A stretch of 64,000 bases of DNA from Podarcis melisellensis (Eukaryota): the NCBI GenBank assembly GCA_964234715.1, contig OZ174276.1. The stretch is one strand, 5' to 3'. Below, piece by piece: positions 17,576-64,000 of the stretch. Under the pieces are notes generated by a model. That model did no database searches and had not been told where the DNA came from. It saw nothing but the letters and a program-made list of their open reading frames with translations. The first letter of the stretch is position 1. Every line of letters begins with the position of its first letter. Position numbers and translations under genes: made by a program.

Positions 17576-20500
17576 TCTCTGGTAGGGAGAGGGGAGAAGG
17601 GGACTCAGTGTGGAACACATGTTTTACATGCTGAAGGTGCAAGAATAAATCCATGACTTCTCCAATTAAAAATTATTCTCAAGATGTAGGGCTGGAAAAT
17701 ATTGTCTGCCAGAGGCCCTGGAAAGTTACTGTCAATCAGAATAGACTACACTGGGCTAGATAGATGGGTGATATGACTCAGCATACTGCAGCTTTATATA
17801 CAGCAGGAAAGATGACGTGGAGACAGCTGGGGAGCTTCATATGTTCAGTGAAGTCTTTTTCATTATTGTATCTGTTGCACTCAGCTGAAGAGCATAGTAC
17901 TGTATATGAGTACAAATATTTTTATAATTACCAAAGTTGGTGGGAAAGCAGTTGTGATCAAAGCTGAATAAAGAAGGTAAAGGTGGTGACCATTGTCAGG
18001 AAAATGGTTATGTGATTGTACTGCTTTAGGGTCAACTGTGTCTGCTAATTGTATCTCTATGAAGTATGCACTTTGGGGAGGAAAAATATGGTATGGTGGT
18101 CCTTGCATCATTTCACAGAACTCATAGTATCTGTGATACTGTGGATATCCAGCTTTCTGAGCTGCCATTTGACTTCCCAACAGCATTTCCTGCATCTAGA
18201 ATCTCTACCAGTGCTTAGAGACAAATGAGGTGATGTATGTTAAAGGACGACCAATTAATAAGTAATACATCATTTCCTGTTAGCAAATATATATTTGAAC
18301 AAGCACTGTCATAACTACATGTGATTTCTGGTTTTGACTGTTTCTGATCATTTTGGAAAACTTCATTTATTCTTGGACAGATTTCTTAAACTCATTGAAT
18401 TAATTTTCTTAAATTAATGGAGAAGTTGTTTGGAATTTCATGAATCGCACACTAGAAAAAGAAAGCCCCAAATCTTCTTGATACTTCACAGTATGTGAAT
18501 TATTAATTTAATTGTTGTGAAACTTCCAATGGGGATGAAATTGTTTTTGCAGAAAATAAGCCTGGTGGTATTGAAAATAACATGGGATTTATTTATTTGC
18601 GTACATTTCCCCCCCCCCCCTTTGATAAGTTTTATTCTATGGAAATGAGAGATTGACAAGCATTGGCGCTAAAGCAAGCTGCAGTGCAAAATTCACATGC
18701 CTAGCTCTGCCAATATGCTTCAATCCTTTTTTATGTTTATTTATATTCTTTCTAATTTAGTGCTGATGAAAGGTGCTGGATTGACAACACTGGAGGCTGA
18801 AGCCCTCTATTTATCCACAGAACAGATACAGCACGGGCGGCAGCAGTGCAGGCTTCCCCACACTGCCCCCACCAATGTGCCTCATCTCTGTCCTGGAGGA
18901 ACCACCTCTAGAGGTGAGAGGATAGATTGGTCTCCATGACCCATACAGTCCTTGGCCTTTCTGTTCAGATTGCCAACAGAGTTACCAGCTTGTAGTGGCA
19001 GACTTAGACACCCTTCAGCCAGGAAGTGCACCAAGTTCATCAGTGTGTTTCACTGCAGCTATTTGGCAGTGATAGGTTCCACACTGATGTGAGGAGTTGT
19101 ACTGGAACCTCGATTTACTGAATGATGACTAACTTGCACTCTTCAGGGTTCAAAGCTTGTCTTAGAAATGAGAAAAGAGTTGCCCAAACTTTAGCAGCTT
19201 TGATTTCAGTCAATAGTCTGATTTCCAGCTAAACCTCCTATATTCTTATTCATGAGCTGAGATCTAACTGAACTGAGATGCAGCTATAATTTGAATATCT
19301 AGATAAGCCTCCCATTCATATGGCTCTGGTTTTTGTTTTGTTTTTATAGATAAACTATTGGATAATATAGCAAAGCTTGTTTTGTTCACAGTGAACAGTA
19401 CAACTCAAATATAACTAACACAAAAAGTAAATATAATCAGCTGAAATGTCTCGCAGCTTGCCTCTGAAAAACGTACACATGTATTTTCATTTTGAAATGA
19501 TAAACATTTGTAGGAATATGCTGCCTTCTTAACTTGGTACAGTAGTATGTCATAAAGCACCTTTTGAGAGGTTAGTAGACACATTACGGGGCTCTGCTCC
19601 ATGAATGAGCTGACTTATCTTCATTGTTAAGGCCAATTTAAATATTATTTTAAGCATTGTAGATATGAGAATCACTTACACACTTCTGCAGGCCGTCCTC
19701 CAATACTGCCACTTCTCAATTGTTGATATAAATATATCATACATGGTCAGATTCATATGCTTAAGATTTTATTTCCAAACACTGTCTTTTTGGATAAGAG
19801 CATTAGGGTAAACATTACACAGTGTATCATTGGCTGTAATATAGTGCAAGCTGTATTTGTGAAAGCTTCCACCTTTTCATTACATAGCTATAAACACACA
19901 AATTAGCTGCAAACGTTGGACTTGTTCATAGATAAAAGCAGAGCACAATGTCCACTTCTGGATGCTAGCTGTTAACAGGCTTAGGGCCAGTTTACCCTTC
20001 AAGGAGCTGTGTTCGCTGCANNNNNNNNNNNNNNNNNNNNNNNNNNNNNNNNNNNNNNNNNNNNNNNNNNNNNNNNNNNNNNNNNNNNNNNNNNNNNNNN
20101 NNNNNNNNNNNNNNNNNNNNNNNNNNNNNNNNNNNNNNNNNNNNNNNNNNNNNNNNNNNNNNNNNNNNNNNNNNNNNNNNNNNNNNNNNNNNNNNNNNNN
20201 NNNNNNNNNNNNNNNNNNNNAGTGTGCATTGGATTACAACTTTAGAATTTATAGTAATTCACAATACTTTTATGAGATACCACAAGATTGGTATCTTTAA
20301 GCAGAGGCTTGACAACCATATGTCAGGAGTGCTCTGATGGTGTTTTCCTGCTTGGCAGGGGGTTGGACTCGATGGCCCTTGTGGTCTCTTCCAACTCTAT
20401 GATTCTATGATTGGTTCTTTAATTTGTGGACAGACCAACATACTACCCCACTCAAAGTTAGTATTTATATGGCACTTTTTCATAGTAGTTAAAGTAATTC

Positions 20501-26500: not shown

Positions 26501-29500
26501 TTAATTCATTGTGGGGGTTATAGGCCCCACATAAACTATAATCCACAGCATTCTCCTCTACAACCAAGGCTGATGTATACTTTTTGCCAAGTCTTGTGTC
26601 AGAACTCCCCTGTGGGTGAGATTCTGTTTGATGTTTGTCAGTAAGATCAATGTTAAGGAAAGGTCTGGGCAAAGTCTTGGTGATTGTTTTCATTGCTATA
26701 GTTTTTTTTTAAGCCTCTTATTTTCTGTTGGACTGCTACCATGAATTTTATAAGTGTGTTAACTTTATCAGGAAAATGCAACTCTTTTCTACTTGTTTTG
26801 TCTCATTAATGTATAAGGAATTTTGTTTTGTTTTTTGTTTTAAAAAAAGGTTTGGGACCAGAGGAAAACAAACTTACCTCATCTTGGTCATCGCGGCACA
26901 GTAACAGGCTCTGTTCTGCATACTGAAATGTCTGTTCCTTGTTCTTTGTTACTGCTTCCTTCATCCTGCTTTTTTTTTAAAAAAAATCTGTAGTCTAAAA
27001 TATATCTTCTTGGTCTCCTAATAAGGCTAATCTATCTAAACTGCTTTCCCATTTCCAGTGAAAGGTCAGCAGAGTAAGTTGATTGCTCCACCTAGTGGTT
27101 ACAAGGCAGACAGCAACCTTTTGGGAGATAGGACTCCCAGCAAGAATCCAGTTCTGCTCCTGCCATTGGTCGCTACTGCTCTCGCTGATCTTTCAGGTTT
27201 TCTCTCTGAATTTCTTCTGTGACAGAAAAGGAAAAAATTAGGAGTTAATAATAGTCCTCTTTCCCTGTGGCCATGTTCCCCTTTGTTTCCCTACACTCCC
27301 CTGAAGGAGTTGTGGTGATTGCTCCTTTAAAGAAGGCTGCTAAGGCAGAATGGGGGAATTCCCCAAAATATAAAAAGCTGTACCTATTGTGAATACATTT
27401 TACACCTTGGAAACTGAATTCACTGACTCCCTTAAAACCCCTAGCATGTATTGTCCTATTTCTCTCTTAGTTTCTGAAAATCTACTTCCCAGAGGTGGGG
27501 ATTCACAATTAAAGGACACCACTGAATGCAGATTGAACTATGCAATCCATAAAACACATGAAGCCCCCACCCTGCCCATTAGAGCAGCACGAACAGCCTC
27601 TGTTTTTATCTAAACATCTGTAAGATAAGCTCTTAGATGAGCTCTTAGACCCATCAAACCAGGATACAAGTTGCACATGTCAAACCCTACTAAAAATCCA
27701 TTGCTCAGCTGCCTTCATAGCAGATGCTACTATGGATACCTCTCAATGTGCTTCTTGAGCCCTTGTAGCAGATGTGGTCACCAGATGCACTTAATGCTCA
27801 AACACTGGGATGTAGACACTCTTATGTCAGCCTCTCCATCGCGTCATATGCAGGAGGCAAGCTTCTCAGGGAGGATGCCCTAAAGGACATCTTAGTCTAG
27901 ATGACAAGTGGAAGGTATTGCTAGCATACAAGACGGACAACAAGCGGCAGAATAGGCACCGTTCTCCACATTTCTACAATCAGTCCTTTTAGAACTACTG
28001 ACGAGTTCCTGGTCAGTTAAAAAAAAAAAGCCGTATCTCCCCAACTTATCACCTAATACATTTTGGAGAACTCTTGTACACCACCAAAAGCCTCATCTCC
28101 TTAGCCCTGGAAAGATTTCAGAAAGCAAATCTGCAGTACAGCCTTAGCCAGTGTGGTGTAGTGCTTAAGAGCGGTAGTCTCGTAATCTGGGGAACCGGGT
28201 TCGCGTCTCCGCTCCTCCACATGCAGCTGCTGGGTGACCTTGGGCTAGTCACACTTCTCTGAAGTCTCTCAGCCCCACTCACCTCACAGAGTGTTTGTTG
28301 TGGGGGAGGAAGGGAAAGGAGAATGTTAGCCGCTTTGAGACTCCTTAAAAGGAGTGAAAGGCGGGATATCAAATCCAAACTCCTCTTCTTCTCTTCTTAG
28401 CCCTCATTCACGCCAATATAATGGTGGTGGCACATGTCCTTGGCCTCTGCGTCTCAGCAACTCCTTGGGTGAAGCACCATGCTTGGCCCCTCCAGTGGGC
28501 CCTACTGCCATTTCCGAAAAACATTGCCCTCAGCAGGCGCCTTCACATCAGGCTGTCACCCCAGCTCCATCACAGCCTGCAATGGTGAACTGACCTAGTC
28601 ATCTTGAGGAGGGACTCCCCATTCCAGGACTCCCAGCAAATGATAATACCTTCAGATGCCAGACTCATCTGTTGGGGCACATTGCAGGGATCTCTCAGTC
28701 CAGGGCCAGTGGTCTGCAGCAGAATCCTCCATGAGCATCAACTGGCTGGAGCTTTGAGCCACCCACGTAGCCCTTCTGCACCTTGCACAACATCTCTCTC
28801 TCTGGAACATGTATGTACATCTGGACAAACAATACCAAAGCCAAATGAAACATCAACAGGCAAGGTTCAGCTTGATCCCCGAATCTGCAGCAAGAAACAA
28901 CCCTCCTCCTGGACTAGGCAGGGATCAAGATTCAATCAGTCACAACTACTGAACACATATACGGACTTAAGAACACTCGGACAAACCAGGCAGAGTGGAG
29001 CCTGAAGCCCCACTTGTTTTCCAACTACTCCAGCAAAGCTTCAGCCAATGCAAAATCAATCTCTCTATATCTAATAGGGATTGCCAACTTCCACAATTCT
29101 TCACCAGGTTTCACACCCCATCAGGCCTGGAGCACTCTGCTCTCCCCCTGGCCACAGGGTCAACTCTATGCTTTCCCTCCAACTCCCATACTCCCATGGG
29201 TCCTCAGGAAAATCAGGGAAGAAAAGGCAAGAGTGCCCCTCATCACTCGGTTCTGGCCACATTGTCCTTGGTTTCCGCAGGTACTGAGCCTAGCACTCTC
29301 CTCTCTGTGGCGACTCCCCCAACTACTGGACATGCTAGTTCAAGGTCTGATCCTTCACCCAGATCCTGCCTGGTTGCATCTGACTGCATGGTTTCTGACC
29401 AGAGATGGCTGACAGATGGATCTCACTCCAGACATCATAGATATTCTGCTGTACTGCGGAAAGTCTTTGACTCTACATATCTACCAATTCACCTGGAAAT

Positions 29501-32500
29501 CTTTCCTCCTGAGGTGCTCTACTGAAGGGTGTAAAGTCAATAACCCTGGTATCTACCATCTTAGAATTCCTTCAAGATGACCAGAGAAAAGGCCTGAAGC
29601 CCAGTGTGCTAAAACAACAGGCAGCGGTGGTCTCCTCCATTCTCTCAAGGCTGCACTCCCCTTCCTTCTCCTCTCACCCACTCCTGAAACACTTTCCCCA
29701 GGGAGCATCTCTTAAATGCCCTCTGACTTTCCATAGATTCGCCTCCAGGGAGCTTCACAGGGTTCTCTCTGTGCTTCAACACCCTCTTTTTTTTAACCTC
29801 TCAGCAAGGTGGCTCCTTTCTTTGAAAATGGTCTTCCTCATCACAATCACCTCAGCCTGCAGAGTCTCCAAGTTGAATGCTCTTTCTGTTGCCAAACACC
29901 TCTGTGTCTTCCATAGAAGCAGAGTAGTGCTAAGGACTGAGACCCCCAAGTGTCTCCTGCAGATTCCATCTCCGGAAGGAGATGGTGCTTCTCTCCTTCT
30001 GTCCATCCCTACTCCATCCTCTGGAAAAGGCCTGACATTCCCTGGACATCTGCAGAACCCTGAAGATTTACACTGGTGGAACTAAAGCCCATAGGCTAAC
30101 TGAAACCCTGTTTGTATCCTTCCACCCACCCTCAGCAGGCAGGAAGATGTCCTCTTCTACCCTTTCTAGGTGGATCAGGGCATGTATAGCGCTGGCCTAA
30201 GAGGTGCAGTGGTCTTCAGCACCCCATGGCTCACTCCACAAAAGCCACAGCAGCCAGGGCTATGTTTTCCTCTCCTGCTTTTCTACAGGAGACCTGCAGG
30301 GCAGCTACTTGGGCAGCACCCAGGACCTTCAAGCACTGCCACCTGGATGCCTACGCACCCTCAGACGCAGCTTTGGGCAGAAGGGCTCTGCAACAGGTCC
30401 TCCCGCTATGAAGCTGCACTCTCTCCTTAGAAAGATTAGCTGCTGTGTGTCCTGCTGACCCTTTCACTGGAAATGGGGGAAAGTACAGTTGTACCTACCT
30501 GAAAGGTAGCTTTCCATTTCTTGATGAAAGGCCAGCAGACCCTGCCCTAGTTGGTTTGGCTGCAGGATTCTTGTCATTAGCACAGTCACATTGTCATTAG
30601 GAGGTAGCATGTTTTTTTCTTCTTTCTATTCTTACACTCCTGGCTGTCGAGCTTGGCGAGTCTGCATGCTGGGAGTCCTACCTCCCAAAATGTTGCTGTT
30701 TGCCTTGTGACCACTAGGTGGAGCCATCGCCCCACTCTGCTGACCTTTCACTAGGAAATGGAAAAACTACACTTCAGGTAGGTACAACTCGTATTTTCTC
30801 GTGATCAAGAAGTGCACAGTTCTCTTACCACTCGCTGCCTTCAGAGCAGGACATAACCTAACAGCTTGGGGCCAGTCCCAAAACTCACTTGATTCAGTGA
30901 GTTTTAAAAGTCAGCCTTCAGTCCCATCAAATATTGCAGCATTACCCAAATTCAATCTGTTTCCATCCTTCAGCTGTTCCAGCAGCACCAAGCAGCTGGA
31001 GTCTGGACAGCGGAACCAGAGAGGCCTTGCCATTCCTGTCTACTCATGTTGGGAGCATCCTGGCCCCACCAGTACCTCCCCGAAGCCTGCCCCATGGTAA
31101 GGAAATGGCCAGTAGGTCTGCAGAAGAAATCCTGCACAAATGCCCAGTTAAACCATGTGAAAGCAAACAATGCCACCTGTTTGCCTTCTGAAAAATGAAG
31201 AAGGAGTAAAAGGAAGAGAAGGCTACACCAACTCTCTTGGCTGATGATTTCATAAATCTTTAAAAAACCAAAAAAAAGCAGTACTCTAAATGTGCTTTGA
31301 GACTGGAATTGGGCTTAAGAGTGATGTACACTAGCCCAGTGTCTTGCTAAAAGCTGTACAGTACAATTACATGCATGTTTACTCAGAAGTGAAGTAAGTC
31401 ACATTGAGTTCAATGGGACTTACTACAATTGCAGCCTAGGTTTAACAAATAAAACATTGAGCTCCAGTTATTGAAGATAAATTAAGGTTTCAGATATTTA
31501 ATGCTAAAGAGCCTGTTGTCTTGCCACGGGAGCCTTGATATGATAACTGTGTGTGTTACACTGTGTTGCTGCCTTCATTTGCTGTTTGTTGTTGTGTACA
31601 TTGAGTTACAATTTACCATGTAAAATAATTGGTTTCTAGGAAACTGACACTGCACTATCAGGACATATCTGTCTAACTAGCATCACAGGACATTTAAGAG
31701 TTGGAAATGCTATTTCTGACTTACTGCTCGCAGATAACTTTTTCCATTTATCTCATTTAAGGTCACTACTCGCTGCATTTTGATGCCTTCCATCACCATC
31801 TTAATGATGCCCCCCCAGCACTGCCTGCACGGACGCTACGTAAGGTAAAACTATATCTCAAATTGCAGAACCACCCTCTGATTCAGCCAGCATACTGAGA
31901 GCAATTCTGTAATCCACCTCTTTGTTTATTTATACTGATTTACTCTACTGTACGCCCTGTGATATTACCGGGAGATTTATCACCTTGCTAAACTTGATGA
32001 GGTGGGAAAGGGTGTTTCTCCTGCTTGCTTATTTAAAACAGTTAAAAGATCCTCAAGCTGTTATAGCAGTGTGTGGTAAGCCCGCATTTCCTGAGAGTTA
32101 GGGTACTCTGAAAGCAGCAAGGGGAGCCTTTTCAAAGCACTTTCCCTGATTGACTTTCAAAATGCTCTTCCTATTTAAGCATGGGTCTCATTTGAAAGCG
32201 TAGATCCATCCAGAGCCACCCTTTCCAAGCACTCTTCTGTACCTGCTCAAACAGGGAGAACAGAGTGCTTTGAAACCACATCTGTGCCAGCAGGAATTGC
32301 ACTTTCAAAGCACTCTTCTTGCTGCTTTGAGAATGGTCCATCCCCAAAGAAATATGGTCTTAATTCACACAGCTATGAGTACTCAAAAGGGTTTGTTTTT
32401 TTTAAGTTAAAGAAGCATTGGGAGGCCTCAGCTACTGCTTGAAAACTCTGAGGAAATTTTGCTCATCCACCCCATTTTCAGGGATTTCAGGAAACTGGCA

Positions 32501-43041: not shown

Positions 43042-46000
43042 GTGAGTCGCCGTCCCCGCGCGGATGGTCTGGGCAGCGGAGGGCGGAAGGGGCCCCCGGG
43101 GCTTCGCAGAGGGAAGGAGGGAGCGCGCTGCTGGGGTGGCCAGGTGGCAACGGCGCCTCCCCTTCACGAACACGGCCTCCCCTTGGCTTGGAAACCGGAG
43201 GCGAGTCTTGCCTCAGCCGCTGCTTCCACGCTTCTTTCCCCGGCCCGGTGCCGCTTTCCTCTCAACGGGAGGGACGCTGGACCCCCACATCGCAAGGCTG
43301 CCATGGGGAGGGAGATGCCCTTGCCAGCCAGCGAGTCTGTTTGGACCAAGAAGGCTATGATCAGTGCGAGTGGCTGCGGGAGCTTTGGAGAAGAAGGGAG
43401 AGGGGGTTCAAGTGTCCTGCCTGCCTGCTCTGTCGCTGTGAAAACCATTGAGAAGATGCAGCTGCCCAAGGGGTTTCCCCAGAAGCTGCTTATATAAGGA
43501 GTAGGGATAGACCCACATGTCTGGGTGTAGCTTTGAGGTCACCATTACTGCAGTGGGGGCTCATGGTAGTTGTCAGGGTCCTGCTTCCATAACGAAGAAG
43601 TGGGGTTGATCCGTTGTTGCTGCTAGGGAAGGAAGGTTAAAAGGATTGTTCCAGGTTTTGGGCTGTATGCTCCTGCCCCTGAGTTGGGAGCGTCCAGGGA
43701 AGCCCCCCTCAACTTCCTGCTGCTGGGAACTGTACACTTGACACTAGTGTGTGGGTGGGGGCCTTTTCTGCTGTGGCACCCTAGCTCAGGAATGTCTTTC
43801 CTTCTGAAATTCCTTTGCTCCCACAGACTACTGGCATGCAGGCACTAGGTGGAAATCAGACTGCCTGCTCAGACTCTGGGGCATTTGTGCTTTTTATGTT
43901 TGATATTAATGTGTTCCCTTTACCCCCCTTTGGATAGGTGTTTTAAACAGGTTATGCTTTATTGTGACCTGCCCAGGAGTCCTAAGATGTGGGTTATAAG
44001 TTGTCTAAACAATCTCTTACCTCATTCCTTTCTGTAATCGTGACCTTCAGATTGATACTAAGTAGGATATATGCTGTGAATTATATCTACAGTGTGATAT
44101 AGTCTCTATAATTGTAATGGCATGTATGGGTCCTCCCTTGTATGACTTAGTAAATGGTTACACCCACAGGCTGAAGGTCTCCTCTACAGTACTTATGTTC
44201 CTGGTTACACACTAATGCAGAAGACTCTGTTCCAGGATTTCTAATTGTTCAACCCTTAACTGAATGAGCAGCAGCTTGAGGAGCTGCTTTTATTTATGTA
44301 TATTTGTTTCATGACTTGACTGAAGCCAAAGTTTGTTTCTGGAACGGACCAGTTTTCAATACAAAGTTTCATCCTTGAAACACAAGGAATAATAGTGTTT
44401 TTAATAATGTGCAGAGTGCTGCTAATTCATGGTTGATAACACACAACCATTCTGGTTGTATTATTTTCCATAGAATTTCTGCATTTCAGAAACCATGCAC
44501 ATCTCAGCTTAGTCTTTTGATCTTAACAAAGAGAATATGGCTCAGCCAAGGTAAAAACATCTTATAAGGCAGAGGTGATGCCCCAGTGCAGGTGCCTGAT
44601 ACCGTCCACCTCCCCACCCCCCAAATTCTCCATTAATTTTGGCAGTGGCAGCAAAAAAAGGTATCACATTGGGGTGGCTAGATCTAGCATCCCACTGAGA
44701 ATGCAAATTGCTCCTACCCCAGTCATTGGATTAAATATTTGATAACCAGAGAAGTGATGACACTCCTCCCCCCGCTCAGCTGGTCTTCATGAATCAACTG
44801 GGGAGACAGGTTGTGTGCAAAACTGTGGCCACATCCAACAATGCCCAAAGATTAATGTGAAAAAGGGTAGCCACCCCTGTTGTAGCTAAGAACGGATTTG
44901 GACTGCCATGTTGTATGAAACATGCCCCTTCACAAGATAGTCTGCTGTCACAAATATGCCCAGTAGTTCATCTTCTACACTAGTGTGTTGGCTTTCGATC
45001 TGCCATGCTTAATTCATTTTGTGTAAGCTAAAAAGAAGAGAGGAGAATTTCGGGGAAGAAGTTCAATTCAGCATTATATCTCCTTCACTTTACAGTGTGT
45101 GTTTCATTCTTGGGAAGATTCTACCAGAGCCTAAAGGAGAAGAATGTTGAGTTCACACCAAACAGTATTGAAAAAGAACTTTTAAAATCCTGTAAAGAAG
45201 CAAAAGGCAAAGAGAACCGTCTGGTAAGTATTTGTAACTGGGTTATGTATTTAAAACATTTTTACCTCATTATTCACCTGAAAAGGCAGTTTGTGCAACT
45301 AATTAAAACGAGAGTCCCTCTGCACAGGCTTAGGTTTTGTTTTTTTAAATGCCAGGTGACAGTTGAAGGAGGGAATGTCCATTGCAGCTGGTCAAGTTCT
45401 GGTCGTAATTGGAATAAAAAACATAACTTAAGACAAAGAGGAAATAGTGGATGCACCTGTCTGTTTGTATCTATTTCCAACAATTTATAAATGGGTTCAC
45501 ACTGTAGTTTCTAAGCGGCCTGCAATAATGATACAGAAGAGATACAATCAGTTCAAATTAGGCATTAAAAACTTGCTTAATGTGCTGGCTGAAATAAAAA
45601 GGGCTTCACTAAGCACTGAAGGTTTAGTGGGGAAGAGGCCTATCTGATCTCAGCCAGGAGGTTGTTCCATAGAGTTGGGCCCTCAATACTAAATGCACAG
45701 CTTCTTATAAGACACCTGTATTGCGCTGACAAAGTATTGCGCTCAAGCAAGCACCACTGAGATTGTTATGAGAAATTCTTATTTAATAAATTTAGAAAAG
45801 TGTGTTGCAGTCATCCAACTTAGATGTAAGTGGGGCATATGTAACAAGGCGTAGACCTGTTTTTTGTTTTGTTTTAAAGAGTGCAGCTGCCACACAAGCC
45901 TGTGCAGAAGTCCTCTAACAGTAGTCACCACCTGGGCATCTGAGAGCAATGCTCTTTCCAAGAGGCCTTCCAAACATGGACCTGGTTTTTCCAAGAGCTG

Positions 46001-51949: not shown

Positions 51950-53350
51950 CCCTTAAAGCTCAGAGACCAGTTGTTTGCACGTGTGCGCGATTGCCGGTTG
52001 CTCCCTTCTTCGGTCTAACAGCCGCTCGTCGGAGGCGGCGCGCTTTGACCGAGAGAGGGAAAGTGGCATCCGCTTTACTTCTACTTAAAGAAAAGGGAGA
52101 GGAGCAAAGGAGGGGGGAAAGCGCTGTCCTTCCTGCTCTCACTTGCTATGCACTTTCTACTCCTCCCTCAGGCTGAGCGGCAGGTAGGTGCCGTGGAGGC
52201 GGGAAAGGCGGCCGGGAACACGGAGGGGCTTTGCTCCTCGCCTCCCCGTCCTCTGGCGGGCGCGAGCAGGAGGGGCTTTCGGGCGGCGGCCGCGGCGTCC
52301 AGCCGGAGCCATTACGGACGCGGCCCGTCGCTCGGCTGGCTCGGGGCGGGGTCGCGGGCTGATGACGTCGTCGGCGCGCACGGCGCGGCAACTGGGCAGA
52401 GCCGCCTTCGCTCGTTCCCTTTTGTCCAAGATGGCAGCTGCCGCCAGAGGCGCCTCCTGAATCGCGGGCCCCGGAGCCATGAAGCGGGCGAGCGAGCGGG
52501 ATTCCAGCCCGGCGGGGTCCGGGGGGACGCGGGGCGCCTCCTCGGCCAAGAGGCCCCGCGAGCGGGAGCGCGAGAGCAGCGGCGCCAGCGGCGGGAGCAG
52601 CAGCCGGCGGGGCCCGCACCGGAGCTCGGGCGCCTCCTCCTCGTCGTCGTCCGCCTCCGCCTCCGCCTCGTCGCGCAGCGGCCGGGACAAGTCGGCGGCG
52701 GGAAGCTCCAGCTCGCGCAGCCACCGCGGGGAAGAGCGGCCCGGAGGCGACTCCAACCACCGCGGCGCCGCCTCGTCCAGCGCCAGGAGCAGCAGCAGCA
52801 GCAGCAGCCAAGCCGCCTCCGCCGCGGCGCCGCCGCCCCCGTCCTCGTCCTCGTCGTCTTCTTCGCGGGCGCTGGGGGCCGCCAAGGCCAAAGTGCCTCT
52901 GGCCGCCGTGGTCGCCCCATCTTTGCTGCTGGGCGGGCCTTCGGCGGTGGCCGCGCCGTCGCTGCTTTTGGCGCCGGGGCTCGGACTGACGGCCGGGGTG
53001 GGGCTGGCCGGGGATCCCCCCGGCTCCAGCGAGTACAAGACCCTGCTGGTGAGCGGCCTGGGCCCGGCCCTCCCGGACCAGCTTCTGGAGGACGGTCTGT
53101 TCCGCCAGTTCCAGAGGTTCGCTAGCGGCGGCGCCAGTGACATTAGCGTCAAGCTCTCCCATACCCCCGAGCTCGGCCGCGTTGCCTATGTCAACTTCAG
53201 GCACCCGGCCGACGCCCGAGATGCTCGAAGGCATGCCAGAGCCCGGCAGCTTCTCCTCTACGATCGCCCCCTCAAGGTGGAGCCTGTGTACCTGCGAGGG
53301 GGCAGACGAAGCCGCACGCCCCCACCTACCCCGTCCCCTGAACCCATGGC
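51950..53350. promoter_or_regulatory. CpG island / RBM15B promoter
   Basis: Very high GC/CpG; E-box CACGTG ~51978, GC box, CRE-like TGACGTCG ~52363, YY1-like CAAGATGGC 52427-52435. Confidence 0.85.
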
Positions 53351-55250
53351 TTTCCTGCCCCCAATCCATGGTGTCTATCCTTATAAACAGAGATCCCTTT
53401 CTCCTGTTGCCACCCCTTTGCTGAGAGAGCCCAGACCACGACATGCTGCCGCTGCAGCCTTTGCCTTGGAAGCTGTTGCCTTGGGTCTCTCTCGGGAGCG
53501 GGAGAGAGTGCTGGATTACTATGGACTGTACGACGAGCGCGGCCGTCCCTATGGATATCCCATAGTGGCTGAAGAGGATCTTATGCCGGAGGATGATCAA
53601 AGAGCGACTCGTAATCTCTTTATTGGCAACCTGGACCACAGCGTCTCTGAGGTAGAACTGAGGCGTGCCTTTGAAAAATACGGCATCATTGAGGAAGTGG
53701 TGATCAAGCGCCCTGCAAGGGGCCAAGGTGGAGCTTATGCCTTTCTAAAGTTCCAGAACCTGGACATGGCACATCGAGCCAAGGTTGCCATGTCTGGCCG
53801 GGTTGTTGGCAGGAACCCTATCAAAATTGGCTATGGGAAAGCCAACCCCACAACCCGACTTTGGGTGGGTGGTCTTGGTCCAAGTACTTCCCTAGCAGCC
53901 CTTGCTAGGGAATTTGATCGCTTTGGAAGCATTAGGACTATTGACTATGTGAAAGGGGACAGTTTTGCCTACATTCAATATGAAAGTTTAGACGCTGCCC
54001 AGGCTGCCTGTGCACAAATGAGGGGCTTCCCTTTGGGTGGGCCAGACAGGAGACTTCGAGTGGATTTTGCCAAAGCGGAGGAGGCACGCTACCCTCAGCA
54101 GTATCAACCTGCACCACTGCCTGTACCCTATGAATTGCTACCTGAAGGCTACAGCAGGCACAGGAGTCTAGAGCAAGACTTAAGGGTGAGAGACAGGACT
54201 CCTCCTCATCTCCTCTACTCAGACCGGGAAAGGGGCTTTTTAGAGGCTGATTGGACCAGCCCTGTCAAAAATGCAGAGCGCAGAAATAATTTGGAGACCT
54301 ACAGTCAGTCGGCACGCAGCCGAAGTGGAGAACGTTGGGGCAGCGATAGTGACCGAAGCGTGCTCAAACCATGGGAGGAAAGGCGTAAACGCCGTAGCCT
54401 TTCCAGTGACCGAGGGAGAACTGCCCATTCACCCTATGAGGACAGAGGCAGGACAAAACCTGGTGGGCCAGCTTTAGATCGCAGTCCAGAGAGGGCTCGG
54501 AAGGAGAACCACACCACAGAGTCTGCCACGGAGAAAGAGCAGAATAACTCCCTGCAGAACAACAGGCATGCATCAGAGGAGAAGCCTCACCGTGAAACAT
54601 CTGATCCTCAGCCTAAGAAAAGGGACAGCGAACGCAATCATCGAACTGCTGAGGCTGAATCAAAGACTCATGAAGAGTCCAAATCTGAAGCAAAGAAATT
54701 AAAAAGCTTATCAGATTATGCCCACACGCTGCAGCTTGCCTGGAATGGGCTACTTGTCCTGAAAAACAGCTGCTTCCCTACATCTATGCACATCCTTGAA
54801 GGCGACTTGGGGGTTATCAATGGGCTTCTGAAAGACCACTTGTCTGGTGGAAAGCTCACGCAGCTCAAGATTGCCCAGAGACTTCGGCTTGACCAGCCCA
54901 AGCTGGATGAAGTAACTCGACGTATCAAGCAAGGAAGCCCTAATGGCTATGCTGTGCTGCTGGCTACCCAGACTGCTCAAGGAGCAAGCACTGAAGGGGC
55001 CGTCCCTGTGGTAGAGCCTGGCTTGCAAAGACGGCTTCTCAGGAATCTGGTCTCTTACTTGAAACAAAAACAGGCTGCTGGGGTGATCAGCCTTCCTGTG
55101 GGAGGGGCGAAGGGTAAAGACAGCACAGGCATGCTTTATGCTTTCCCTCCTTGTGAATTCTCTCAGCAGTACCTCCAGTCCGCACTAAGAACATTGGGAA
55201 AGTTAGAAGAAGAGCATATGGTGATAGTGATAGTCAAAGACACTGCCTAG
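52479..55250 (+). CDS. RBM15B: RNA-binding motif protein 15B (Spen family: 3 RRMs + SPOC), single exon, 923 aa
   Basis: Kozak gccATGA; RRMs (EYKTLLVSGL, RNLFIGNL, RLWVGGL); SPOC domain (WNGLLVLKNS...LRNLVSYLKQKQAAGVISL...HMVIVIVKDTA*); synteny. Confidence 0.97.
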   Translation: MKRASERDSSPAGSGGTRGASSAKRPRERERESSGASGGSSSRRGPHRSSGASSSSSSASASASSRSGRDKSAAGSSSSRSHRGEERPGGDSNHRGAASSSARSSSSSSSQAASAAAPPPPSSSSSSSSRALGAAKAKVPLAAVVAPSLLLGGPSAVAAPSLLLAPGLGLTAGVGLAGDPPGSSEYKTLLVSGLGPALPDQLLEDGLFRQFQRFASGGASDISVKLSHTPELGRVAYVNFRHPADARDARRHARARQLLLYDRPLKVEPVYLRGGRRSRTPPPTPSPEPMAFLPPIHGVYPYKQRSLSPVATPLLREPRPRHAAAAAFALEAVALGLSRERERVLDYYGLYDERGRPYGYPIVAEEDLMPEDDQRATRNLFIGNLDHSVSEVELRRAFEKYGIIEEVVIKRPARGQGGAYAFLKFQNLDMAHRAKVAMSGRVVGRNPIKIGYGKANPTTRLWVGGLGPSTSLAALAREFDRFGSIRTIDYVKGDSFAYIQYESLDAAQAACAQMRGFPLGGPDRRLRVDFAKAEEARYPQQYQPAPLPVPYELLPEGYSRHRSLEQDLRVRDRTPPHLLYSDRERGFLEADWTSPVKNAERRNNLETYSQSARSRSGERWGSDSDRSVLKPWEERRKRRSLSSDRGRTAHSPYEDRGRTKPGGPALDRSPERARKENHTTESATEKEQNNSLQNNRHASEEKPHRETSDPQPKKRDSERNHRTAEAESKTHEESKSEAKKLKSLSDYAHTLQLAWNGLLVLKNSCFPTSMHILEGDLGVINGLLKDHLSGGKLTQLKIAQRLRLDQPKLDEVTRRIKQGSPNGYAVLLATQTAQGASTEGAVPVVEPGLQRRLLRNLVSYLKQKQAAGVISLPVGGAKGKDSTGMLYAFPPCEFSQQYLQSALRTLGKLEEEHMVIVIVKDTA

Positions 55251-59932: not shown

Positions 59933-59991
59933 TCACTCATTCAGAGATAAGATTATGTCATCTTCCAAATCCAAATTATCTGAGCTGTCAG
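59933..59991 (-). CDS. DCAF1: DCAF1/VPRBP last coding exon (DSSDNLDLEDDIILSLNE*)
   Basis: Minus strand cctttccag|CT GAC AGC ... AAT GAG TGA matches the recalled DCAF1 C-terminus DIILSLNE; synteny; upstream exons lie beyond the window. Confidence 0.9.
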
Positions 59992-60677
59992 CTGGAAAGG
60001 GGACAAATGGGTTATTTGAGCAATGCAAAGTCTGATATGTCAAAAAGACACCAAAGCAGGGTAACTTGTTCCAAGTCAAATACGAAAGACCATGCACAGG
60101 CACCCTTTAGAGTGGTATGCCATCTAGAAACCATAAACAATGTGCAAAACAGGACTGTTTCACCACAAGCCAAGGCACAGCTCCTCATTATAAAGAGAAT
60201 ACTTACCACCAGAGTGAGATGCCTTCAGGAATTACTGAAAACACTCTAGAGAATCAGTATGTAGCTCCAAAATCCTCTGTAGTGGGAGTAAAAGATGCAA
60301 CGGGCACTAAAACAAGGTGAGTTTCCAGAGACACAGCATGGGTACAATATATTGTTCCTAAGCTGAAGCGTATACTATTTAGGGAGAAAGGCAAGGACAG
60401 GATTTAACTGACCAACGCAACCAGAGGAGAATGACTACCAAGGAGAGTCAATTTAGACAAGCAGTTGCCACCTTACAATCAGCTGTCCTTCACATCCACA
60501 AACACAGCTGAAGTAACTGCTTATTTCTATTATATCTTAAAAAGAAACGTTTTGGACTGTTTTTAAATACAATGGAAGTTTTAAAGACTTTCCAAAGAAG
60601 GGAGAGTTCCAGGTAGGTAGCCGTGTTGGTCTGCCGTAGTCGAAACAAAATAAAAAAATCCTTCCAGTAGCACCTTA

Positions 60678-61030
60678 AAGGTAAAGGTAAAGGGACCCCT
60701 GACTATTAGGTCCAGTCGTTGCTGACTCTGGGGTTGCGGCGCTCATCACGCTCTATAGGCCGAGGGAGCCGGCGTACAGCTTCCGGTCATGTGGCCAGCG
60801 TGACTAAGCCGCTTCTGGCGAACCAGAGCAGCGCACGGAAATGCCGTTTACCTTCCCACCGGAGTGGTACCTATTTATCTACTTGCACTGGTGTGCTTTG
60901 AAACTGCTAGGTTAGCAGGAGCTGGGACAGAGCAACGGGAGCTCACCCCGTCGCAGGGATTCGAACCGCCGACCTTCTGATCGGCAAGTCCTAGGCTGTG
61001 TGGTTTAACCCACAGCGCCACCCACGTCCC
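60678..61030 (-). mobile_element. Sauria SINE (Squam1), full length
   Basis: Minus strand starts GGGACG..GTGGCGCTGTGG, box B GGTTCGAATCC, (ACCTTT)n tail, perfect 10-bp TSD TAGCACCTTA (60668-60677 / 61031-61040). Confidence 0.93.
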
Positions 61031-61063
61031 TAGCACCTTAGAGACCAACTAATTTTGTTATTG

Positions 61064-61101
61064 GTATGAGCTTTCGTGTGCATGCACACCTCTTCAGATA
61101 C
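61064..61101 (-). ncRNA. Minimal type I hammerhead ribozyme (Penelope-type)
   Basis: Minus RNA: GUAU-CUGAAGA-G-GUGUG-CAUG-CACAC-GAAA-GC-UC^AUAC; all core nucleotides present, 4-bp stem I, palindromic stem II, AGCU palindrome in place of stem III. Confidence 0.8.
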
Positions 61102-64000
61102 ACTGAAACAGAAGTCACCAGACCCTTCTATATAGTGAGAGGGTGGGGAGGGTCAACAGGTTTACCACACCTATCAGCCAATCACCCATTCCCACCACCC
61201 TTCTGAGTAATACCCCTTCCCACCCTCTCAACGTAGTTGGTCTCTAAGGTGCTACTGGAAGGAATTTTTTTATTTTGCTTCAAACAAGGGAGACAAATGA
61301 ATGAGCTGTTTTGTACAACCCTGCTGCTGTGCACCCCCTTTTTTGCACAAACAGAAGGAGGGCAGAATCAGCACAAGTGGCCCAGCTCAAAACAGAAGCG
61401 AGTACCTCTTTTCTTGAGCGACTTTCCTCACCCAGCATATAGTAAGTATAAGGTAAACCAGCCACAAGGGAAGCTGCTGTTGGGATACAGTAAAGTCTAC
61501 AAGAGGGCAACTGGGTGACGTGAATTATGTGCAATATTTCTGTCTCCAAAATAGTACTTGCTTCTTGGTAAGTTGATTGGTACCACACCACAGCTCAAGG
61601 GACAGGGGGAAAAACACTCAGTGATCATTCAGGTGGCCTTTTCCCCTAACTCTTGTATAAAATCTGTCTAGGATATGGAAGAGTTGTCTTCATCAGCAGG
61701 ATCCACCTAAACAACTCTGAAGAAACGCAAGCACATTCACAAGCAATTCCTAACCCCTAGTTTTCCTAACGGAGTCCTTGATGAGATCTTCAAGGACACA
61801 CTTTCTTGAAATCAACAAAAACCACCTCCTGCCAGAATACCAGCAGAAAAAAGACCGGGCAGGTCTTTTTCAGGGTATGTGGAGTGGATATTGGCCGACG
61901 GTGCTCTTCAGAGGGAACTCTGCAAAGGTATATTTGAAAGTAGCAGTTCAGGAATCTGATACAATAATGAAGTGTGCACCATTGTCTACATGAGATGATG
62001 CCCCTGGGATTTGAGCATCGGTGAAAAGAAGAGTCTTTTTGCAAGGCAGATAGAAAGGCACTAACTCTGAGAAGGAGGTACCAATAAAGCACACATGGGA
62101 ACACACAAACACACACACCAGATTTACACAGCTTTTTTTTTTTAAAGGAAAAGCCTCGTTTTAATGTCATGGTTGGAATGGCTGTGGAGGGGGTCCACCT
62201 GAGCTTCTCTTTCATCTCTATTCCTTTGAATGTAAGCGTTTAACTCCTTTGTGGACCATTAATCCCTAGTTCCATCCCATGTGGGTTTATTGGACTCCTT
62301 TTCCTCTCTCTACTAGTTTTTCCATGTAACAGTTATAGCTCTAAGTAATCATTTTTAAATCAGAGTCTAAATCTCCTTTACATTCTTACCTAGACGAAAG
62401 CCCCACTAAATTCAACTAGATTTTTTTCCTGAGTACACATTGATAAGATTGCACTGTAAATGTGTTTGCAGCTTACATGATCTGCACTTTCAAGATCCAA
62501 TCACAAACGTTTAGAATCCAGGATTTTCCTCCATCTGAATAATTATTGTTATTTTTCTCTCTGTCATACTCTCTCCCTCTCTTCCATTCCACCCAACTAA
62601 TCAAACCCACACATAAACAGTTATTGATAGGGCATGTGTGAAATGGACTTAAAACCAGCTCACAGCTAATGCTGCATAAAAGTCATCAAAACGAGGACTA
62701 GAAACAGCAAACAGTTTAGCTGGCTAGTGTGCCCCCATAAAAGACAACCAGGCTGCAAACCAATCCCAAGGAAAAAGATGATGTCTGACCTGTGAATACA
62801 TCTTCATTTGAGTGTGATAATAGATGAATAGGAGCACTTAAATTCCTTTAAACGTTCAGCAACCAAGTGGCATCTGCATGAAGTGAGCATTCTAGCGTGT
62901 GTCATCTGCTTACTACGCAGAATACATACTTATCCTCCCGAAGTGTAAATATGCCAATCTATTCCTGCATGCTATCAATGCTTGCCCTCTGCTTCCACAC
63001 ACTCCTCCCAAAATGCCCCACCAGTGCCACATTTCCCCACCATCACCACCCCTTCTTGCAAGTGCATCCTCCACCACCACCTCCCATGTTTTTCGTGATG
63101 CTTCACACTAAAAAGTCCCCAGAAGAGCAATGTCAGCCAAATACTTATTTTGCACGACAGATGCTAGACAGAAGCAACTGGGAGGACCTGTGATATGGAA
63201 CAAGCAGATCCACAGAACCGCATGTTCTGCCTGAGAACAGAGACAACAGGAAGGTGGAGCTGTTTATTTGTGTTTGCATATTGTGAGACTTTGGAAGGAA
63301 GCTGCCTAGATGTGAGAAGAGGCAGGGAAACCATGCAATGAAACTATTAAAAAACAAATACTTTCAGTAATGCTCCCTTTCTGGCATCACTAGCTTCTGC
63401 TGGAATGCACAGGCTATTTTTTCAGCTGCAATCCAGAACCCTCTAATGGGCTTATTTCCCCCAGTAATGTACAACAATTGCACAGCATCTTTTTAGATAC
63501 AATCCATCTTTTAATTAGAGCTCTGCAACATGTCCTGGTGGGATATGAACAAAATACCTACCACCATTAAGAACATAGAGGACTGACAAATAAACAAGAA
63601 AATCGCTGGAGACCTGACAGGGTGCTTGCCCCCAGGTTCATGTGCCTGATTGCAGAGAAGCAGGGCGGCACTACAACAAAACAAGAGAAGAGCACACATG
63701 AGTCTGCTAGCAAAAGCATTTTAGCTCAGGATGAACGGAAACGGGACCAGACTGGGACAGAGGGTTGTCTTCTCAAACACTCCCAGCAACACGTCACCTT
63801 CCAGGCATCCGATGTCCTGCCTCTGCTGAAATTAACAGCAAAGGTTCCAGCGATTTCACTGAAGGGAAGCCTCTCTCTCCCCCCACCCATAGCTTCCCCC
63901 ACCAAGACTACCTTAAATTCCCAAGATTACACACACAAGCACACCAGTTGTGAAATTTAAGAATTTTGCTCCAACATAAATGATTAACTTTCTTGTGACG

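Follow-up and report, generated by a model that had tools for sequence, protein, structure and literature searches.

The 38-base motif that we analysed on the minus strand of the 64-kb window (the whole stretch of DNA under study) was best explained as the hammerhead ribozyme of the pseudo-LTR (pLTR)/ORF junction of a Penelope-like retroelement (PLE), or of a non-autonomous element that depends on a PLE for its mobility. It lies within a fold-back insert in the last intron of DCAF1, where it is most likely inert, and we assign this reading as a whole a probability of roughly 80%. The attribution of the motif to PLEs was well supported by its architecture. As the initial annotation had proposed, all parts of a minimal type-I hammerhead of the PLE kind are present, and the four published sequence hallmarks of that class were found together with a short helix I. 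The coordinates of all features of the locus are listed in Table 1.

The sequence of the motif was read directly from the minus strand. From 61101 to 61064, it comprised GUAU, CUGAAGA, G, GUGUG, CAUG, CACAC, GAAA, GC, UC and AUAC; these were the same letters as those given in the initial annotation, and the core was complete and intact. The catalytic boxes CUGANGA, GAAA and UH were all present in type-I order, and the successive elements were the 5' strand of helix I, C3 to A9, an extra G, helix II, G12 A13 A14, A15.1 G15.2 C16.2 U16.1, C17 and the 3' strand of helix I. Helix I contained 4 bp (GUAU/AUAC), and the core CUGAAGA was followed by one unpaired G between A9 and 10.1. Helix II contained 5 bp (GUGUG/CACAC) with a CAUG loop and was closed by the G10.1-C11.1 pair. 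Together with this self-complementary loop, helix II formed a 14-nt palindrome (GUGUGCAUGCACAC, which is identical to its own reverse complement). A helix III hairpin was absent; its place was taken by A15.1-G-C-U16.1, which is the palindrome AGCU, with G15.2-C16.2 palindromic as well. Both palindromes, described previously from the letters, were evident in the sequence, and the cut that had been predicted between 61068 and 61067 agreed with the coordinates, as C17 is base 61068 and the predicted scissile bond follows it. Minimal hammerheads of this type were defined in the pLTRs of PLEs by Cervera & de la Pena 2014 (PMC4209133), whose hallmarks are the catalytic boxes, a single nucleotide separating A9 from 10.1, the G10.1-C11.1 pair and a palindromic 15.2/16.2 without loop 3. 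According to the same study, helix I is short (4-5 bp), loop 1 is poorly defined and helix II is longer than usual (6-8 bp).

We evaluated the significance of the motif with a strict structural descriptor. It demanded the boxes CUGANGA, GAAA and UH between the two strands of helix I (≥4 bp), with at most one extra nucleotide after CUGANGA, a G10.1...C11.1 hairpin (≥4 bp) before GAAA and a palindromic 15.2/16.2 before UH. When both strands of the 64-kb window were searched, the descriptor matched only the motif at 61064-61101, and it matched nowhere in 300 windows simulated from this sequence with a first-order Markov model. The bare conserved boxes were not significant, with 11 matches of a relaxed pattern in the window vs 8.6 expected. 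The initial annotation had suggested a motif search as a check, and its outcome was divided: the structural descriptor recovered the motif as a single match, and the Rfam hammerhead models, including Hammerhead_1 (RF00163), gave no match at the gathering threshold, nor at E ≤10 on 601 nt or 86 nt around the motif. Consequently, the motif cannot be assigned to the Rfam hammerhead families. This non-detection was expected because the motif has no helix III hairpin. The weak miRNA-like Rfam matches near the motif merely reflected the 17-bp hairpin of the pLTR-like sequence. If unrelated intronic DNA had come to resemble the hammerhead consensus by chance, the chance frequency of the boxes and the silence of the Rfam hammerhead models would both be accounted for, but the full descriptor was found in 0 of the 300 simulated windows, the motif showed the hallmarks of the published PLE class unprompted, and it stood where such a motif would be expected within a structured fold-back repeat that has a tail. 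We therefore regard a chance match as hardly credible.

Table 1. Features of the hammerhead locus and of the adjacent DCAF1 exon (positions of the 64-kb window).
Feature	Position	Strand	Evidence
Minimal type-I hammerhead motif	61064..61101	-	Sequence; single descriptor match, 0/300 simulated windows; one copy in window
Body of right-hand 5'-truncated copy: pLTR-like sequence ending in hammerhead	61052..61233	-	Sequence; fold z = -6.9
First part of right-hand 3' tail	61031..61051	-	Perfect 21-bp inverted match to 61234-61254
tRNA-derived SINE, later insertion in tail	60678..61030	-	Flanked by TAAGGTGCTA at 61040-61031 and 60677-60668
Rest of right-hand 3' tail after SINE	60626..60667	-	Similarity to left arm stops in AC-rich strand
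Left arm, inverted, more strongly 5'-truncated, 3' tail only	61234..61297	+	~86% identity to right-hand tail
Coding part of last DCAF1 exon	59936..59991	-	Acceptor AG 59993-59992, stop codon 59935-59933; match to DCAF1/VPRBP C-terminus

The motif is located on the sense strand of the last DCAF1 intron. This placement, already made in the initial annotation, was borne out by a C-terminal DCAF1 match and an acceptor site. The end of an ORF at 59991-59936 (-) matched residues 1489-1507 of the 1507 residues of DCAF1/VPRBP, i.e., the last 19 residues, and the exon was preceded by a polypyrimidine tract and the AG at 59993-59992. The computed distance from the cut site to this final acceptor was 1,076 nt upstream, in agreement with the previous estimate of ~1.07 kb. 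No acidic DCAF1-like exon was found in 61300-64000; therefore, the last DCAF1 intron probably runs beyond the window. To the left of DCAF1, we found a MANF-like exon (ARMET_N) at 45095-45490 (+) and an RBM15B-like intact, intronless ORF of 923 aa with RRM and SPOC domains at 52479-55250 (+). These neighbours are the set expected from the human 3p21 gene order, which we take to be DOCK3-MANF-RBM15B-DCAF1. Elsewhere in the window, the region 18781-18960 (+) showed a strong match to Rfam uc_338 (TUC338) over the full model length (141.7 bits, E = 2.5e-35). This region had no obvious coding frame and is an element of the ultraconserved type that lies upstream of MANF/RBM15B; human uc.338 lies in PCBP2, and the match in the window may mark a paralogous conserved element. 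Two ORFs at 28995-29525 and 29606-30085 (+) had no Pfam match at E ≤0.001, and a run of 200 N (an assembly gap or masked stretch) was present at 20021-20220.

Self-comparison revealed that 61234-61297 (+) is an inverted copy of the minus-strand sequence downstream of the ribozyme, which runs from 61051 to 61031 and is continued at 60667-60626. The interruption in the right-hand tail corresponded to a tRNA-derived SINE with a clean 10-bp target-site duplication, one copy of which (TAAGGTGCTA, 61040-61031) forms the last 10 nt of the first tail part. The CpG observed/expected ratio of the SINE was 0.81, which indicates that it is young and points to a SINE family that is, or was until recently, active in the genome. 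If the SINE is disregarded, the locus consists of two 5'-truncated copies that form a fold-back, arranged head to head and joined at their truncated 5' ends. In the right-hand copy (-), the ribozyme is retained together with ~180 nt of upstream sequence and ~80-100 nt of tail, and the left-hand copy (+) contains 64 nt of tail only, with no hammerhead and with all of its CpGs lost.

The similarity between the two arms stopped within the AC-rich strand CAGACCAAC, which is paired with GUUGGUCUC of the tail in a predicted stem; both arms terminate in this strand, and the cut site lies ~80 nt from the end of the arm similarity. The true end of the right-hand tail may lie up to ~25 nt past 60626. 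The whole unit folded far better than shuffled sequences (z = -6.9), and its pLTR-like body carries a 17/16-nt hairpin with arms at 61229-61213 and 61152-61137. The flanks of the fold-back were 52-62% A+T, and no convincing target-site duplication was found in them. The hammerhead unit was present as a single copy within the 64-kb window, with no direct repeat, and its status as a repeat is suggested by its architecture together with the literature.

This arrangement would be expected of an insertion primed on both target strands. We infer that the PLE enzyme would have cut both target strands and primed reverse transcription on each, with reverse transcription starting inside the AC-rich stem-loop downstream of the ribozyme. 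Two 5'-truncated 3' ends would thereby have been joined head to head in the DCAF1 intron, and the tRNA-derived SINE would have been inserted into the tail afterwards. The hammerhead would be intact as part of a copy that has not yet decayed and not through use by DCAF1. Because the two arms differ by ~14% and CpG loss was observed in the left arm only, they may derive from two separate insertions rather than from one double-primed event.

The AUG in loop II (61083, -) opened a frame of 76 codons when the SINE was skipped, and the other two frames closed early; the 76-codon frame probably enters the flanking intron after ~35 codons. In the pLTR-like body, at 61126-61233 (-), we also observed GGGTGGG (GT-rich) boxes, an inverted CCAAT box (ATTGG, 61182-61178) and TATATA at 61134-61129, 33 nt upstream of the hammerhead. 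Published pLTRs carry promoters, and the layout of these boxes fits a putative RNA polymerase II promoter aimed at the last DCAF1 exon.

A Pfam search of the window ORFs of at least 130 aa revealed no PLE RT or GIY-YIG ORF. This result does not exclude a PLE origin because most motifs of this class, which has been found in reptiles, are single dispersed copies from truncated PLEs (PMC4209133). The source was probably a PLE family other than the Poseidon_Ac element (PAc) of Anolis carolinensis, since no likeness to Poseidon_Ac was seen by eye, or a non-autonomous derivative of such a family; the sequence family in the DCAF1 intron was not traced in the literature examined on PLE hammerheads. 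Instead of a 5'-truncated autonomous PLE, the unit could be one monomer of a non-autonomous element with a hammerhead, namely either an animal non-LTR retrozyme or a pLTR derivative resembling a SINE. Such an origin would account for the lack of a PLE ORF nearby, and it would agree with the consensus lengths of reptile retrozymes, which average 176 bp, with the common occurrence of dispersed monomers and with the derivation of retrozymes from pLTRs. However, the locus has a single hammerhead and no tandem repeat, and the frame opened by the loop-II AUG, along with a tail that ends in an AC-rich stem, is in keeping with the beginning of a PLE ORF like that of PAc. We consider this origin unlikely. 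The autonomous and non-autonomous readings differ solely in the source element and not in the identity of the motif. A retrozyme array was rejected as a description of the locus, as there was a single motif and no head-to-tail repeat of the unit.

The initial annotation had also raised an influence of the ribozyme on DCAF1 processing, and here our results diverged from it: this influence was unsupported in view of the lack of a partner motif in the window, a weak helix III, a disfavoured active fold and the precedent of PAc. No second hammerhead was found on either strand in the portion of the gene that lies in the window, and the inverted arm of the fold-back does not extend as far as the ribozyme. 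Helix III of a minimal hammerhead can form only with a second copy, and the lack of such a partner in cis therefore argues against cleavage; a lone motif of this kind would probably require the PLE protein as well. The computed intermolecular helix III contained 4 bp, with an energy of about -3.9 kcal/mol. When the motif was folded in silico together with 10 to 100 nt of flanking sequence, the active structure lay 3.8-6.4 kcal/mol above the minimum. The predicted probability of helix I in the native context was ≤1%, as the CUGAAG box is taken up in pairing by an upstream UUUCAG and GGUGUG by CAUACC. The predicted cofold minimum was a domain-swapped dimer formed through the 14-nt helix II palindrome (-30.6 kcal/mol). 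We rejected this structure as a productive ribozyme dimer, as its two AGCU segments were at opposite ends of one long helix.

We weighed these results against the proposal that nascent DCAF1 pre-mRNA is cut by the sense-strand hammerhead, which might dimerise in trans with other PLE transcripts or be aided by a PLE protein and would thereby modulate 3'-end processing or the DCAF1 level. The intact core, its sense orientation and its position 1,076 nt upstream of the acceptor are compatible with cleavage, and two palindromes, AGCU and the 14-nt one of helix II, would allow pairing in trans, but the trans helix III would be limited to 4 bp, no cis partner was present in the window, and the active fold was 4-6 kcal/mol above the minimum, with the core sequestered by the upstream UUUCAG. 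The PAc hammerhead is otherwise silent and requires added PLE protein for cleavage in vitro, which would favour an aided reaction; however, no RNA-seq reads start or end at the cut site of this Anolis element in vivo (PMC11167929). Moreover, PLE hammerheads are only weakly active even as dimers (PMC4209133), and retrozyme copies are depleted from introns. Since a cut upstream of the last exon destroys the mRNA precursor, selection would act against any copy with strong activity. Taken together, cleavage of DCAF1 pre-mRNA appeared very unlikely, and we infer that the hammerhead is most likely inert in this transcript.

A conditional activity appeared highly improbable. The hammerhead might be switched on where PLE protein or abundant PLE transcripts are present and cut DCAF1 pre-mRNA there, or the solo pLTR, with its CCAAT and TATA boxes 33-80 nt upstream, might act as a promoter within the intron and drive transcription into the last exon. 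If the hammerhead did cut in PLE-expressing cells, retrotransposon activity would be coupled to the level of DCAF1, a CUL4 substrate receptor.

The PLE-derived, most likely inert hammerhead of the DCAF1 intron is an ordinary member of a known ribozyme class. It represents one more dispersed copy of a class that is massively abundant in non-mammalian, non-avian animal genomes, including those of squamates, and its intronic location is commonplace for such elements. The locus would provide a clean worked example of a PLE end inserting as an inverted pair halted in the AC-rich stem. In addition, an intact sense-strand hammerhead core is tolerated here in an intron of an essential gene, which fits the low intrinsic activity reported for such motifs.

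Upon comparison with the minimal hammerheads of PLEs (PMC4209133), we found the DCAF1-intron motif to be similar in all four sequence hallmarks and in its helix I of 4 bp, although there were differences. Helix II contained 5 bp with a CAUG loop in the DCAF1 intron and was thus shorter than in the examples published, the Schistosoma families having 7-8 bp, and the motif had no RT/GIY-YIG ORF beside it.

The PAc protein of Poseidon_Ac cuts and extends both target strands. [quoted passage not shown] An AT-rich target is a further trait of PAc-type insertion. In the deposited Poseidon_Ac sequence, we found CUGAGGA, an extra U, G...C, GAAA, CG and UC at the pLTR/ORF junction, which is the same layout as that of the DCAF1-intron hammerhead. 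Both also have an ORF start within the ribozyme, and the tail of the DCAF1-intron copy ends, as in PAc, in an AC-rich stem-loop, ~55-90 nt past the cut site; extension on two strands would account for the inverted copies. In contrast, no sequence similarity was evident by eye in the ribozyme or the tail, and the AUG of the DCAF1-intron copy is in loop II, 16 nt before the cut, whereas that of PAc is 26 nt before it. In addition, no RT/EN ORF was attached to the DCAF1-intron copy.

Animal non-LTR retrozymes (NAR 2020, PMC7229834; bioRxiv 10.64898/2026.07.22.740005) likewise carry type-I hammerheads that act as dimers and are derived from pLTRs, and many of them occur as dispersed monomers, a large share of which are intronic. 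In Xenopus, 44% of retrozyme copies are intronic, yet they are somewhat depleted vs intergenic DNA (PMC7229834; bioRxiv 10.64898/2026.07.22.740005). Unlike the tandem arrays that give circular RNAs, the DCAF1 intron has one unit in a fold-back.

The amniote intronic hammerheads of de la Pena & Garcia-Robles (2010; Rfam Hammerhead_HH9 and HH10) reportedly have full, stable helices with tertiary loop contacts and are said to be conserved at orthologous positions. The DCAF1-intron motif differs from them in being minimal, transposon-borne and unmatched by any Rfam model. It nevertheless shares with them the status of a sense-strand intronic hammerhead in a protein-coding gene and raises the same question of pre-mRNA processing.
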